This document shows, in pieces, positions 35,494 to 60,125 of a stretch of DNA of 64,000 bases. This stretch comes from Camelus dromedarius (lineage: Eukaryota): NCBI RefSeq assembly GCF_036321535.1, contig NC_087459.1, forward strand, positions 22,196,001-22,260,000, read 5' to 3'. Every line of letters starts with the position of its first letter. Within the stretch, counting starts at the first letter, position 1. Both the position numbers and the translations under genes were made by a program. The notes below the pieces were generated by a model. The model ran no database searches, was not told where the DNA came from, and saw nothing but the letters and a program-made list of their open reading frames with translations.

Positions 35494-37660
35494 TTAAGCT
35501 AATCCTGCAAACAGAAGAGGTATGTTAGTTAGAAGAGCACTAGCTATATATTTTCAACAAAACGTAAGTCCTCCAAATTATGAAAGGAGGGATGAAGCCC
35601 AAAATTATTAGTTTCTTTCATAAGCTATTTAGGCATCCTGCAACCAACAAAACTTCAACTCTACACTTGCCACAACTGAGAAAAGACATACATGCTTCCA
35701 GGGGTGGAGTCCTGAAGCAGAAATATATTCACTTTGGTACTAGATGTAGCTTCATCAAAGACTTCAGATAAACTTGTCCATGTAATCTCCTAATTCCACA
35801 GTTCAACCACCTGAAAGGATTAACTTCTCCCCTATTTCCTACCTAAATGAAGGTGGGAAAATGAAAATAGGCGTTTTTAATAGGTGGTGAATTCTCAGGT
35901 TGATACGAGGAACTCACATAAAACAAGCTGACTGCCAACATTCCAGAGAGCCTAAAGCTCAAGGTCCCACTGAGGGATTTAATAAACCTGTCTCTCTCAG
36001 ATGAGGTGTCTAGAATGATAATGCTGTCAATCCTTATGCTCGTTCCAGGACCGTGGTGAAATCAAATGTAATTTTATAGTCATAGCACTAAGGCTATGAA
36101 TCATTCACATGCAATAACCATAGTAAGACTGCAGGAAAAAAAAATCTTGGTGCACACAGTAACCTATACTTGTTTCAGGAAGAATCAGATTCAGAACACA
36201 ACTGGCAAAAGCCTAAGATAATGAGTAGAAACCTCTACACTAGCTCCTTGTTAGAGGAGTTAATTACTTTTAGATTAATTTAAACAAAATCTCCTCTAAC
36301 TTGTCAGTTTAATTTATTAAACGCAGACCCCCTAAGTTTCACAGGGGCCAGGGGTACCATTCAGTGAATTACGCAGATACAAATTCAATCCTGGATTGAT
36401 TTATCACCTACCATTCGCCAGTCTGCACTGTTTCAGCACCTCACTGAAACCCTCACAAAGCTTAAGGTCACCCTGGTTCTGGGCACATTCCAAAAACTGT
36501 TTCATCTCATAGAAGCACGGACCAGACTGCTGCTGCGGTGTCAGCTGGGTTCCCTGAGGCTCCTGCAAAGGCATAACATTCAGGACTGGTAAGAAAGGAA
36601 ATCAGACTTTTCCCCAACAAAGAGCAAGAGCCACTGTCTTTGAAGTTACCTGGGGAAACAGAACTAGAACTAGATGCAAACTACAGCTGCCATCTAAGAA
36701 CATGGAACATGAAAAAATTTAAGACGTTGATCGCCTCACCCAAATCTGGGTGACACTTTCCTTTATCCAATTATGCAGGTTTTTTACAAGTAATTTGTAA
36801 CAGTTTTCATTTGTAATACAAGTATTCAATAGTAACAACATAAAAGTACATATGCAGATAAAAATTATTTTCTTTTGAATAAAATTATATAATACTATGT
36901 TACTTTCTTACAATGTTTGCTGAAACAATTTATATAAAGCTGTAGTGTTTTGAGACAACTAGGACAATATGTTTCTGTCTTTTTTACATTTTTCCTAACT
37001 TCTTGTCGTTCCAAAGTTTGACTGCTTTTCTGACAACAAAGGACGCACATTCTTCTGACTGTTTTGCCTCGAGGATTTTTTCTAATTTGTAAACTGTGAT
37101 CTATCGGTTCTACTAATTGGATCACATATCACTCTGCAGCTAAGAAGTATCAAAGTAACGCCACAGACTATTCTGTTACTCAAATTTATTCTGTGCAGAA
37201 TAATGACATTCCAAGAAGTAATAAAACTGTAAAAAGGTTGAAAATTGAAAATAAGAAATTGTTGTTTAAAAAAATCCCAATTATACTGGAAAAACAAACA
37301 GATTAATTATAAGCACTTATACTGTCAGTGCATCACACTGTGGTAAAGTGCGAATTTGGGCCCCACAGGAAATACACCCAATCCACAATGGGTGATCAAA
37401 GTGTTAAAGGCAGAAAGAGCTTTAGCAAAAATTCTACTTGTAATCAGAAAGATTCAAGAACAAAAATGCAAATACAGTGAAACGGTTATTTGGGCATCTA
37501 AAGACCAGTGGTTCAGTGAAGTTTCATGGAGGAAAAAATGGGACTAATAGAAAAATAGATGGATGAGCGTTTCAAGTACACCAGAAATAGAGTATACACC
37601 CATGCTCATTAGAGGAGAAAAATTACTGCCAAATGTGGCTTTGGGGGTGGGGGGTAGGTT

Positions 37661-37716
<56 letters not shown>

Positions 37717-39712
37717 TGTTTAAAAATGGAGATACTGGGGATTTAACCCAGGGCCTCATGCATGCTAAGCATGCACTCTACCACTGAGCTATAACCTCCC
37801 CACTCAAACATGGCTTTTGATAAACCATTCTCCACATGTGGATTCTAAAATTACAGTTCCTACACGTAAACAATTTGCAAATAACTAGGTTTTCTCATAA
37901 AATACACCACCGAAGGGAATGCTGCCCCAAATCTTACCTGGTAAGTGATGTCAGGCCTTGAAGGCTCAGCATTACTCCCTCCACTGAAGCCCCCAGTGAT
38001 GGCATGACCTAGAGTGTGGCCGACAGCAGAACCCACAGCCACGCCAGCTGCAGTGGTTGCCATCTGGGCCATTAGACCTGGCTGCCGGGGTGCAGCAGCA
38101 GGGGAGCCAACAGCAGATGGTGGAGCCACTGCTGGTGGCTGAGCTGCTGGCGCTGGCCTGGGTGCAGCTCTCATTGGAGGTGCCCGGCTACAAAAGAAAT
38201 GAGCAAAAAGTGTGAGTTCCCACTTCCAACCAGGTTTGGAGATTGCCAACCTAAAAAAAAAACCAATGAAACAAAAAACCCCTTGCATGTTAAAAATTAA
38301 CCTCAGAATTTTCATTTTAAATCATTAAACACATATTCCACATACATATAAGAAAACTTAACAGAACGCTACATACATATAAGAAAACTTAACAGAACGC
38401 TACATACATATAAGAAAACTTAACAGACCGCAATTCCTTGAACTATTTACATCATTTTCTTTTAACCTTCTGTTAAGGTTGTAATTACCAAATATAAACC
38501 CTTTTCCCCTGCTTTTTGCAACCATTTCCACGTATTCACATAGTCTATAGTATCTTTAAAGAACACAGTTATTTCAATACTTCATAAAAATTAAAATAAC
38601 TGTTAATGAGACAAAAACCTCTTGCTTTCATGAAGCTGACATTTTATTGAGGGATCAAATAAATGTTAAGGAAAAAAAAAACTGGTGGGTGGGAATAGTT
38701 CAGTGGTAGAGCACAGGCTTAGATGCACCAGGTCCTGGGATCAATTCCAAGCACCTCTATTTAAAAAAAAAACAAAAACACAAAAAACTTTCACATAGAT
38801 TAAACTCCCTCTGTCCATTTTTAGATTGCTTCCTTGGGTGCTCTTCCCCCAAATAAGGCTAGGTTCAAAAGTTCACCTCCTATCAGGTGGTATCTGGCAC
38901 AACTTTACAAAAATGTGGTTTCCCCTCCTTTGGCTAGCAGCATCTTTCCATAAGTGAATTCCTTCCCTACACGCCTAGCATACTGTTTGAACACAATTCA
39001 CCATAGTCCAGAGAAGCAACGTGGTTCTGTGCTAAACGTCCTGAGTCTGTAACCGGAAAACTCGGGTCTGAGACTGGTTTCCCTACTTACTGGTTGCATG
39101 ACCTTGGACAAGTCACTTATCACGAGTCTCCTGTTTCTCTATTTCTGTAAAGCACGAATAACATCTACCTCTGAGGTTATCACTGGCAATACATTTTACA
39201 AATATTTTATGAACCAGAAAACGTCATATATAGGTGAGGCCTTGGCGGTACTGGGCCGAGTCCTTGGAACGCTCACTGCTCATGGAAGGTGCTCAAAGAT
39301 TATTTACTGAATTGAAATGCGATGATTTTCCCGATTATACCACCTTTATTTTTTTTTTCTATTTTTGACGTTTCAGCCGGATTAGTTACAAATATTCACT
39401 CTTTCTAGCACTGGCCTGTTTTTACTTAAAATGAGCTGTAAAATATTTTAGTAATTCATGGACATTCGAAATTAGAACGTTTTGCCACCAACAGGAAAAC
39501 TAGCCAAACCCCTACAACCAGCTTGAGGCGGCCAGAGGCGGGCCCACGCCGCCCCGGCCTTCGGACTCCCCCACCCGCCGACAACCGGCCGCGCCGTGGC
39601 CCAACGCGGCCTCCCTCTGTGTCACGGCGCCGGCAGGGCCCCAAGGCCCGCGGTGGCCTCACCTGGCCGGAGGGGCCACACGGGAAGTGCGACTTCTGCT
39701 TCCACGAGGCAT
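35494..39712 (-). CDS. CHCHD2: Coiled-coil-helix-coiled-coil-helix domain protein 2 (CHCHD2/MNRR1), 4 coding exons, 153 aa
   Basis: Minus-strand exons 39712-39663, 38187-37938, 36562-36412, 35504-35494; total 462 nt. [46 protein letters not shown]..; twin CX9C motif [22 protein letters not shown]; ends RLANGLA*. Confidence 0.98.
36723..37403 (-). mobile_element. Internally deleted piggyBac DNA transposon (681 bp) in CHCHD2 intron 2
   Basis: TTAA at 36719-36722 and 37404-37407. 13-bp TIRs gacgttgatcgcc (36723-36735) and cactttgatcacc (reverse complement of 37391-37403), 10/13 identical. Subterminal palindromes at both ends. Frame 37125-36895 encodes [27 protein letters not shown], a piggyBac transposase Cys-rich C-terminus. 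Confidence 0.85.
37643..37801 (-). mobile_element. tRNA-Ala-derived SINE with expanded (TTTA)n tail
   Basis: gatactggggatttaacccagggcctcatgcatgctaagcatgcactctaccactgagctataacctcccc; about 14 TTTA units at 37659-37715. Confidence 0.9.
38340..38431. repeat. 31-bp tandem repeat, 3 copies (CHCHD2 intron 1)
   Basis: acatacatataagaaaacttaacagaacgct at 38340-38370 and 38371-38401 (identical) and 38402-38431 (near-identical). Confidence 0.95.
38687..38787 (+). mobile_element. tRNA-Ala-derived SINE (diverged)
   Basis: gggtgggaatagttcagtggtagagcacaggcttagatgcaccaggtcctgggatcaattccaagcacctcta plus A tail. Confidence 0.85.
39060..39310 (+). mobile_element. MIR SINE
   Basis: ctacttactggttgcatgaccttggacaagtcactta..gtgctcaaagattatttactgaattgaaatg. 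Confidence 0.7.
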
Positions 39713-48048: not shown

Positions 48049-48182
48049 NNNNNNNNNNNNNNNNNNNNNNNNNNNNNNNNNNNNNNNNNNNNNNNNNNNN
48101 NNNNNNNNNNNNNNNNNNNNNNNNNNNNNNNNNNNNNNNNNNNNNNNNNNNNNNNNNNNNNNNNNNNNNNNNNNNNNNNNNN
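48049..48182. other. Assembly gap (134 N)
   Basis: Run of N. Confidence 1.
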
Positions 48183-48405: not shown

Positions 48406-48581
48406 NNNNNNNNNNNNNNNNNNNNNNNNNNNNNNNNNNNNNNNNNNNNNNNNNNNNNNNNNNNNNNNNNNNNNNNNNNNNNNNNNNNNNNNNNNNNNNN
48501 NNNNNNNNNNNNNNNNNNNNNNNNNNNNNNNNNNNNNNNNNNNNNNNNNNNNNNNNNNNNNNNNNNNNNNNNNNNNNNNNN
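48406..48581. other. Assembly gap (176 N)
   Basis: Run of N. Confidence 1.
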
Positions 48582-52766: not shown

Positions 52767-52883
52767 TTTTTTTTTTTTAACTAAAAAAAAATTTTTTTTT
52801 CCCTTAATGGATGCACTGGGGATTGAACCCAGGACCTTGTGTTTGCCAAGCACATGCTCTGCCACTGAGCTATACCCACAGAC
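52767..52883 (-). mobile_element. tRNA-Ala-derived SINE with 14-bp TSD
   Basis: cactggggattgaacccaggaccttgtgtttgccaagcacatgctctgccactgagctatacc; perfect TSD tcatggccattctt at 52753-52766 and 52884-52897. Confidence 0.92.
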
Positions 52884-53425
52884 TCATGGCCATTCTTAAC
52901 ATTTGTGATCCTTGCCAGGCAAAAGCTCAATGATATCCTATCAAATTGGATGAATCATATTTTCCCAGTAGCTGGGCTGGAGAAAAATGATGGATAGTCA
53001 GCAGCCAAAGCCCAGGCACACCAACCTCAACACCTGTACCTACAGGCCACCCTTCTCCGTGAGCAGCTCTGAGGTGAGGCTTTTGCTTTGTAAATACCAA
53101 CTAGCAATAGTTCATAACAGTAAGTGAAGTAGTAATTACTTCATGAACAAACTCTCTGTCCCCAATTCCATCACACATTGGATTGGATAATCGTTTTCAT
53201 GCATATTTCCATATGCCGCGACTCTCACCATATCTTCAAGTGAGCAGAACAGTTCCACTAAGATAAAAGGAGTTGATCCTTTCAAATGGGCTTTCAAAAA
53301 CTGCCTGTGGGCAGTGTTGGTGGAATATGAGTTCTGATAATCATGAACAAACAGAGCCTTGAATTTTATTGATTTCATTTTGTAATACTTGCTGATTTTG
53401 CACTAATTTGGGGGTAATGGTAATT

Positions 53426-54525: not shown

Positions 54526-54663
54526 NNNNNNNNNNNNNNNNNNNNNNNNNNNNNNNNNNNNNNNNNNNNNNNNNNNNNNNNNNNNNNNNNNNNNNNNNNN
54601 NNNNNNNNNNNNNNNNNNNNNNNNNNNNNNNNNNNNNNNNNNNNNNNNNNNNNNNNNNNNNNN
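54526..54663. other. Assembly gap (138 N)
   Basis: Run of N within L1. Confidence 1.
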
Positions 54664-59408: not shown

Positions 59409-60125
59409 TTAATAATAGCTTTATTGAGATGTAATTCACACATCATCCAATTTGCTTATTTAAGGTGTACAGTTCAGTGGTTTTTAGAATATTCAGAGTT
59501 GTGCATTCATCTCCACAATTTTAGGATGTTTTCATCACCCTGTAAAGAAACTCACACCCCTTAGCCATTGCCTCCTATTCCCTCCCTTCCTCTGTGCCCT
59601 GACTTAGGCAACCACTAACCTACTTTCTGTCTGTATGTGGATTTGCCTCATCTGGACATTTAAAAAAAATGAAATTGTGTAATATGCAGTCTTTTGCAAT
59701 TGTCTTTTTTCACTTAGCNNNNNNNNNNNNNNNNNNNNNNNNNNNNNNNNNNNNNNNNNNNNNNNNNNNNNNNNNNNNNNNNNNNNNNNNNNNNNNNNNN
59801 NNNNNNNNNNNNNNNNNNNNNNNNNNNNNNNNNNNNNNNNNNNNNNNNNNNNNNNNNNNNNNNNNNNNNNNNNNNNNNNNNNNNNNNNNNNNNNNNNNNN
59901 NNNNNNNNNNNNNNNNNNNNNNNNNNNNNNNNNNNNNNNNNNNNNNNNNNNNNNNNCTGTATACTTAACCTTTGGAAGAACTGCCAGACTGTTTTTCTAG
60001 GGCGGCTGTTCCATTTTGTTTCCACCAGCAATGTGTGAGGGTTGCAATTCCTCCACATCCTTGCCAACATTTGTTATTATCTATCTTGCTTATTATGGTA
60101 ATCCTAGTGGGTGTGAAGTGATAAG
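59409..60125 (-). mobile_element. L1 (L1MB-like) 3' region with internal gap
   Basis: taatagctttattgagatgtaattcacacatcat..aggcaaccactaacctactttctgtctgtatg..ccaccagcaatgtgtgagggttgcaattcctccacatccttgccaaca. Confidence 0.85.
59719..59956. other. Assembly gap (238 N)
   Basis: Run of N within L1. Confidence 1.

Follow-up and report, generated by a model that had tools for sequence, protein, structure and literature searches.

PiggyBac transposases bind the terminal inverted repeats (TIRs) and subterminal repeats of their elements, excise them via hairpin intermediates and integrate them at TTAA tetranucleotides, which are duplicated upon insertion. To our knowledge, mammals outside bats, tenrecs and a few primates are taken to have little or no lineage-specific DNA transposon activity. 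Looper, which comprises ancient eutherian piggyBac fossils, is the sole family of this superfamily that is expected in a camel from human-centred catalogues (PMC5753468). The primate families MER75 and MER85, tied to PGBD4 and PGBD3, are lineage-specific, internally deleted elements with TTAA targets, TIRs of the 13-bp class and subterminal inverted repeats (PMC12324416, PMC2268245); subterminal inverted repeats have been described for piggyBac-like elements (PMC12324416). The families piggyBat/piggyBac1_ML of Myotis and piggyBac1_Mm/npiggy1_Mm of mouse lemur are each confined to a single mammalian lineage, outside which the orthologous sites are empty, a distribution that is explained by horizontal transfer (PMC2997546, PMC10162687), and a large survey found few horizontal-transfer events outside bats (PMC10162687). 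CAC termini have been reported for bee elements (PMC10140906). Surveys of hymenopteran piggyBac elements give other TIR logos (CACTA/TACCG; CCCTTT) and mention neither a terminus of the type described below nor a mammalian relative (PMC10140906, PMC13416829). Camelid genomes are credited with four piggyBac MITE families each, without detail (PMC8605555); the literature on piggyBac in camelids yielded nothing beyond this count, and a literature text search for the TIR string returned only unrelated primers.

The element described here lies in a window of 64,000 nucleotides of the Camelus dromedarius genome, to which all positions refer. Reading of the sequence from 36500 to 37650 delimits a 681-bp element that occupies 36719–37407 including the flanking TTAA on both sides. 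The low-coordinate TTAA (36719–36722), on the 3′ side in element orientation, adjoins the 3′ TIR (36723–36735, minus strand), which reads GACGTTGATCGCC on the plus strand and GGCGATCAACGTC on the minus strand. Next to it is the 3′ subterminal palindrome tcaccca-aatc-tgggtga (36736–36753), with 7-bp arms and a 4-nt spacer, that is probably part of the transposase-binding end. An AT-rich 3′ untranslated region (36754–36894, minus strand) with weak DNA similarity to that of the bee-type element L003 (see below) separates the palindrome from a 76-codon open frame (36895–37125, minus strand). The 5′ internal region (37126–37374, minus strand) has no detectable protein similarity and comprises the 5′ untranslated region and the junction of the catalytic-domain deletion; it holds the conserved motif GGGGCCCAAAT (37354–37364, minus strand), which reads ATTTGGGCCCC on the plus strand. 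The 5′ subterminal palindrome caccca-atccacaa-tgggtg (37375–37394) has 6-bp arms and an 8-nt spacer, and its right arm overlaps the inner four bases of the 5′ TIR (37391–37403, minus strand), the plus strand of which is GGTGATCAAAGTG and its reverse complement, on the minus strand, CACTTTGATCACC. The high-coordinate TTAA (37404–37407) completes the element. Both TTAA copies are established by direct reading and by orthologous sites that are empty and carry a single TTAA. The 5′ end thus has the form TTAA-CACTTTGATCACC...TTTCCTGTGGGGCCCAAATTCGCAC, and the 3′ end GTCACCCAGATTTGGGTGA-GGCGATCAACGTC-TTAA.

The two 13-bp arms are complementary at 10 of 13 positions, or at 15 of 18 when TTAA and one further base are counted, and correspond to pair I2 of the repeat finder (18 nt, 83% complementary, 655 nt apart). 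PiggyBac TIRs, of about 13 bp, start with CCC/CCY or CAC; here the 5′ TIR begins with CAC and the 3′ TIR, read inward, with GAC, one change from CAC. When the window was searched for TTAA followed by the TIR pattern with up to three mismatches, four places were found where 0.29 would be expected. The element itself accounts for two of them with its ends, and the other two are three-mismatch matches without a partner end. No second copy is present in the 64-kb window, and a single copy is documented. The TTAA flanks, the 13-bp TIRs and both subterminal palindromes listed in the first-pass annotation of this DNA are all found in place. Elsewhere, the window contains a tRNA-derived SINE after a T/A-rich run (52785–52895), unrelated to the element, and four runs of N (48049–48182, 48406–48581, 54526–54663 and 59719–59956) that total 686 bases.

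The element is located within intron 2 of CHCHD2, where it had first been placed, 157 bp upstream of the exon 3 acceptor, and the transposase remnant and the gene are on the same strand. CHCHD2 was searched exon by exon, with the open frame of exon 3 (36407–36601) as query. Retrocopy alignments put this exon outside the element, at approximately 36411–36562 on the minus strand, with its acceptor downstream, in gene orientation, of the 3′ TTAA. The exon encodes the twin CX9C motif (minus strand, 36425–36517), preceded by a 3′ splice acceptor, and its peptide is identical to Camelus CHCHD2 XP_010970691.2 at 52 of 52 residues (100%). The last CHCHD2 exon extends from 35505 downward according to the same type of alignment. 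One AATAAA, at 37190, lies on the sense strand common to the element and CHCHD2. An effect on CHCHD2 splicing is conceivable for a sense-oriented insert at this distance from the acceptor, and no effect is indicated here. Exon capture from the element was considered and rejected: the extra residues of the predicted Camelus CHCHD2 isoforms X1 and X2 are N-terminal, and none is element-derived.

The 76-codon frame is the only sizeable one in the element. An exhaustive HMMER search with this frame against 1.84 billion representatives returned 25 matches at E ≤ 1e-3, six of them at E ≤ 1e-10, with a best E value of 3.8e-16 and 54–56% identity over 69 residues. All 25 matches sit at the C-terminus of piggyBac-type proteins, the domains of which include PF13843, the catalytic core of piggyBac, and PF13842, its zinc ribbon. 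A feature search of the ESM Atlas led likewise to clusters with PF13842. The frame is thus a genuine transposase C-terminal fragment, as had been supposed from the sequence, and corresponds to a remnant of the cysteine-rich domain. In the alignment, the cysteine pattern CxxC...CxxC...CF is kept in the camel remnant, with Y at the position of the fifth cysteine. The Pfam scan of the 76-residue product matched no piggyBac family, and neither a sequence search of the PDB nor a word-index protein search gave a candidate.

A tblastn comparison of all matched proteins with the element limits the similarity to 36913–37119, and detects no protein similarity in the 284 bases between the 5′ end of the element and the remnant. 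The DDE_Tnp_1_7 catalytic core is absent from the camel copy, for which tblastn finds no more than the C-terminal domain and Pfam no piggyBac family, as is to be expected of an internally deleted derivative. The catalytic domain has been lost, and the copy is therefore internally deleted and non-autonomous, unable to move by itself. The element combines a TTAA duplication, 13-bp TIRs of the CAC type, subterminal inverted repeats at both ends and a C-terminal cysteine-rich domain of the zf-Tnp_2 type, all of them traits of the piggyBac superfamily. Its assignment to this superfamily, made in the first-pass annotation, is supported by the same features, the duplication being attested by empty sites.

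Relatives of the remnant with a named source are bees (Eufriesea, Melipona, Megachile, Bombus and Heterotrigona) and wasps (Ampulex, Mischocyttarus and Odynerus). Anopheles is a more distant named relative, and the remaining named matches all belong to aculeate Hymenoptera. No mammalian protein, PGBD and bat piggyBac proteins included, is among the 25 matches at E ≤ 1e-3; the labels 'PGBD3-like' and 'PGBD4-like' that occur among them are attached to Megachile and Anopheles proteins. To judge from its remnant, the camel element is not a PGBD3/4-type primate family. MER75 and MER85 nevertheless offer a parallel from a different order. The camel element has in common with them its lineage-specificity, internal deletion, TTAA target, TIR class and subterminal inverted repeats, but these families are restricted to primates, the camel remnant does not match mammalian PGBD3 or PGBD4, and no domesticated or autonomous partner is known for the camel element. 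The closest relatives are hymenopteran, which may in part reflect database content, because protein databases hold few mammalian transposon fossils. Identity of the C-terminal domain to bee elements is moderate, about 50–56% on 69 residues. In a maximum-likelihood tree of this domain (22 rows, 74 columns), the camel sequence is placed on a long branch and groups with the rows from bees and a single vespid wasp, with support of 85/87. The placement within the bee clade is suggestive, not strong.

The termini of the hymenopteran elements were compared with those of the camel copy. The bee-type contig L003, which like L004 has a CpG observed/expected ratio above 1, as in bee genomes, contains an 859-bp TTAA-flanked element that starts with TTAA-CACGTTGGTCGCT...TTTCCCACGGGGCCCAAATGCGAC and ends with GTCACCCATATTTGGGTAAC...GGCGATCAACGTG-TTAA. 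The same element is present in L004: L003:717–1583 and L004:1–773 are 100% identical over the common 773 bp, the L004 contig beginning inside the element. The two contigs derive from two different ENA assemblies and may thus represent one locus sampled twice. The L003 element keeps part of the C-terminus of the catalytic domain. The element L001 of Eufriesea mexicana ends with GTCACCCATATCTGAGTGACGT-GGCGTTCAACGTT-TTAA, and its terminus reads AACGTTGAACGCC inward. A third relative, L002:4004–4791 (ENA ERZ27284637 k141_177245), is TTAA-flanked, approximately 770 bp long and of the form TTAA-CACGTTGAATGCC...GGCAGTCAACGTG-TTAA. The contig that bears it is 123 kb long and has 29% GC and a CpG observed/expected ratio of 1.18, so that its host is probably an insect; the protein cluster of L002 comprises 10 members, which come from contigs of comparable length.

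The 3′ terminus GGCGATCAACGTG of L003/L004, read inward, is CACGTTGATCGCC letter for letter. This is precisely the ancestral TIR that had been deduced from the two diverged camel ends alone. The camel 3′ TIR is identical to GGCGATCAACGTG at 12 of 13 positions and to the Eufriesea terminus GGCGTTCAACGTT at 11 of 13; the 5′ TIR matches CACGTTGATCGCC at 11 of 13 and the L003 5′ terminus CACGTTGGTCGCT at 9 of 13. The similarity continues inward. The motif GTCACCCA.ATTTGGGT of the camel 3′ palindrome adjoins the terminus in both L003 and L001, and the 5′ 60 nt or so of the camel element align with the L003 5′ end, including TTTCC...GGGGCCCAAAT. Over the coding remnant, DNA identity of the camel copy to L001 and L003 is 65%, and that between L003 and L001 is 68%. 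The aculeate elements thus resemble the camel element in their TTAA target, their CAC-type 13-bp TIRs with nearly identical termini (CACGTTGATCGCC in L003/L004, AACGTTGAACGCC in Eufriesea L001 and CACGTTGAATGCC at the L002 5′ end), their subterminal motifs (GTCACCCA.ATTTGGGT and GGGGCCCAAAT) and the occurrence of short, internally deleted derivatives (L003, L002). They differ in that the host of the camel copy is a mammal, the copy itself is CpG-depleted and broken, and its deletion breakpoints are unlike those of L003. On these sequence comparisons, the camel element appears to belong to a piggyBac lineage with CACGTTGA...GCC termini, the other known members of which are in bees and wasps.

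The flanking intron has a CpG observed/expected ratio of 0.23–0.26 and the L003 element one of 1.14; the camel element, at 0.46, falls between them. This intermediate value fits a once CpG-rich sequence that is decaying in a methylated genome. Relative to the inferred ancestral TIR CACGTTGATCGCC, three of the 26 TIR positions have changed, and the reading frame is interrupted ahead of its final 76 codons. Such decay, with CpG lost in part, fits an old insertion, tens of millions of years in age, that is still short of the background state; the numbers of changes are too low to yield a date.

Orthologous loci were found via the exon 3 open frame and then with a longer CHCHD2 protein; named cluster members were chosen and their genomic loci compared. 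The comparison suggested in the first-pass annotation, an alignment of CHCHD2 intron 2 in search of an empty site with a single TTAA, gave a consistent answer in pig, humpback whale, three felids and the laurasiatherian Logan contig L007. In L007, the exon 3 peptide of which is that of ursid (bear) and star-nosed mole CHCHD2, the two camel flanks meet directly, with a single TTAA between them (gctttctgcctTTAAaatttttcac). The intron-bearing CHCHD2 of humpback whale (L014) has an empty site that reads ccttctgcctTTAAtttttttcac, and that of pig (L012) reads tttctatctTTAAatgtattcatgttcc. The site is likewise empty in the three felid assemblies (L016–L018). In the six-row alignment of these loci (A3), TTAA is the sole invariant block, and the boundaries of the element match to the base the gap in four other mammals. 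Intronless CHCHD2 retrocopies (goat L009, narwhal L011, pig L013 and humpback whale L015) and the cetacean-type contigs L005 and L006, in which a SINE covers the site, were left out as uninformative.

Further features of these loci were recorded along the way. Three PRE-1 SINEs are inserted around the empty TTAA site in pig (L012:3600–4640). A CHR-2-type SINE with tandem repeats is found in cetacean contigs (L014:3743–4169, L005:1–410 and L006:60–250) in the same intron, approximately 50 bp upstream of the exon 3 acceptor, equivalent to window position ~36614. The four retrocopies are annotated or called as protein-coding, and the goat model spans 14.7 kb yet holds a processed copy.

Camelids are the first-branching living cetartiodactyls. 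With the site unoccupied in all the other mammals compared, the insertion therefore arose on the camelid branch, no earlier than its divergence from pigs, ruminants and whales. The insertion is supported as camelid-lineage-specific by four independent kinds of empty orthologous site, Suina and Cetacea among them, in agreement with the earlier suggestion of lineage specificity; precise excision or lineage sorting could mimic this pattern in principle, at the cost of at least three independent fixed excisions. An insertion common to boreoeutherians, which would have marked the element as an ordinary fossil, is at variance with the empty site in every informative mammal compared. The event is thus younger than the divergence of camelids from the pig and whale lineages and older than that of the two organisms in which the element is present.

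These empty sites bear directly on the view that the copy is an ancient eutherian fossil of the Looper family, inserted before the boreoeutherian radiation and lost by precise excision or sorting in all other lineages examined. Looper is the background family expected in any eutherian, with 531 human copies of which none is intact (PMC4625184), the first-pass annotation saw some resemblance of the camel ends to Looper without a clear match, and piggyBac excision restores a single TTAA, so that an excised site and one never occupied look alike. At least three independent, fixed and precise excisions would nevertheless be needed to empty the site in pig, humpback whale, felids and L007; furthermore, the CpG ratio of the element is still about twice that of its flanks, and none of the 25 protein matches is mammalian. 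We therefore regard this view as very improbable. Both Looper and the camel element belong to the piggyBac superfamily, but Looper consists of ancient insertions common to eutherian orders and the camel site is empty in four other lineages. By the evidence of these orthologous sites, the camel insertion stands outside an ancient, eutherian-wide burst of the kind expected of Looper.

The same alignment disposes of the proposal that the structure is a chance association of TTAA with a short inverted repeat in an AT-rich intron, or an assembly chimera that incorporates insect DNA. In AT-rich DNA, TTAA is common, and short imperfect inverted repeats are numerous in this region (31 pairs), yet the element ends exactly, to the base, where the gap in four other mammals does, and the protein homology reaches E 3.8e-16. 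The structure is more than chance, since the empty sites show the two camel flanks adjacent and sharing one TTAA. A chimera is contradicted by sequencing reads, as 20 runs from 10 studies and two organisms contain 0.93–0.97 of the sampled words of 36200–37900, and by the CpG depletion, which indicates long residence in a vertebrate genome. Given its presence in these runs, the element is not an assembly artefact and is widespread in these animals. Read presence, protein homology and the empty-site alignment together already refute both forms of this proposal, the probability of which is negligible.

We consider it probable, with good confidence, that the element is a dead, internally deleted piggyBac-like transposon of the bee/wasp-type lineage that was mobilised in trans into CHCHD2 intron 2 in the camelid lineage and then decayed. 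An autonomous copy would have supplied the piggyBac transposase in trans. The enzyme would have recognised the 13-bp terminal repeats and the subterminal palindromes and cut the element from its donor site. Insertion at a TTAA of CHCHD2 intron 2, with the duplication and the exact boundaries that are seen today, would have followed in the camelid germline, no earlier than the time at which camelids parted from the lineages of pig and whale. Decay has followed insertion, and the copy is presumed to be now inert and with no present function.

How the family reached this germline is a separate matter, given that the empty sites date the insertion alone and not the arrival of the family. The insertion could derive from a long-established mammalian piggyBac lineage, inherited vertically and still active only in the camelid stem, with no horizontal transfer. 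It is considered rare, however, for an active DNA transposon to be maintained by vertical descent over long periods in mammals (PMC10162687), which counts against this origin. No mammalian PGBD or bat piggyBac protein is matched at E ≤ 1e-3, and the ends and the C-terminal domain match bee and wasp elements. MER75 and MER85 were active late in primates, a precedent in its favour (PMC2268245), and on balance we consider vertical persistence unlikely. Horizontal transfer is plausible, agrees with the affinity to Hymenoptera, and is in our view the most likely way in which the family entered the germline of camelids. In kind, the element then parallels the Myotis and mouse lemur families, each likewise confined to one lineage of mammals. 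Those families are young, with many near-identical copies and intact transposases, whereas the camel genome has so far provided one old, decayed copy with an affinity to Hymenoptera.

A fuller scenario of transfer is advanced tentatively, and we lean somewhat against it in its entirety: a bee/wasp-type piggyBac with CACGTTGATCGCC termini would have been transferred horizontally to the germline of stem camelids, in a hitherto undescribed event, and given rise to a family specific to Tylopoda, the first lineage-specific piggyBac invasion documented in Cetartiodactyla, of which the CHCHD2 copy would be a fixed relic. A piggyBac of the camelid lineage that is allied to hymenopteran elements would bring one more order onto the short list of mammals with lineage-specific DNA transposon activity, and would provide a new case for how insect-type transposons reach mammalian germlines. 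It would also serve as a datable insertion marker for Tylopoda.
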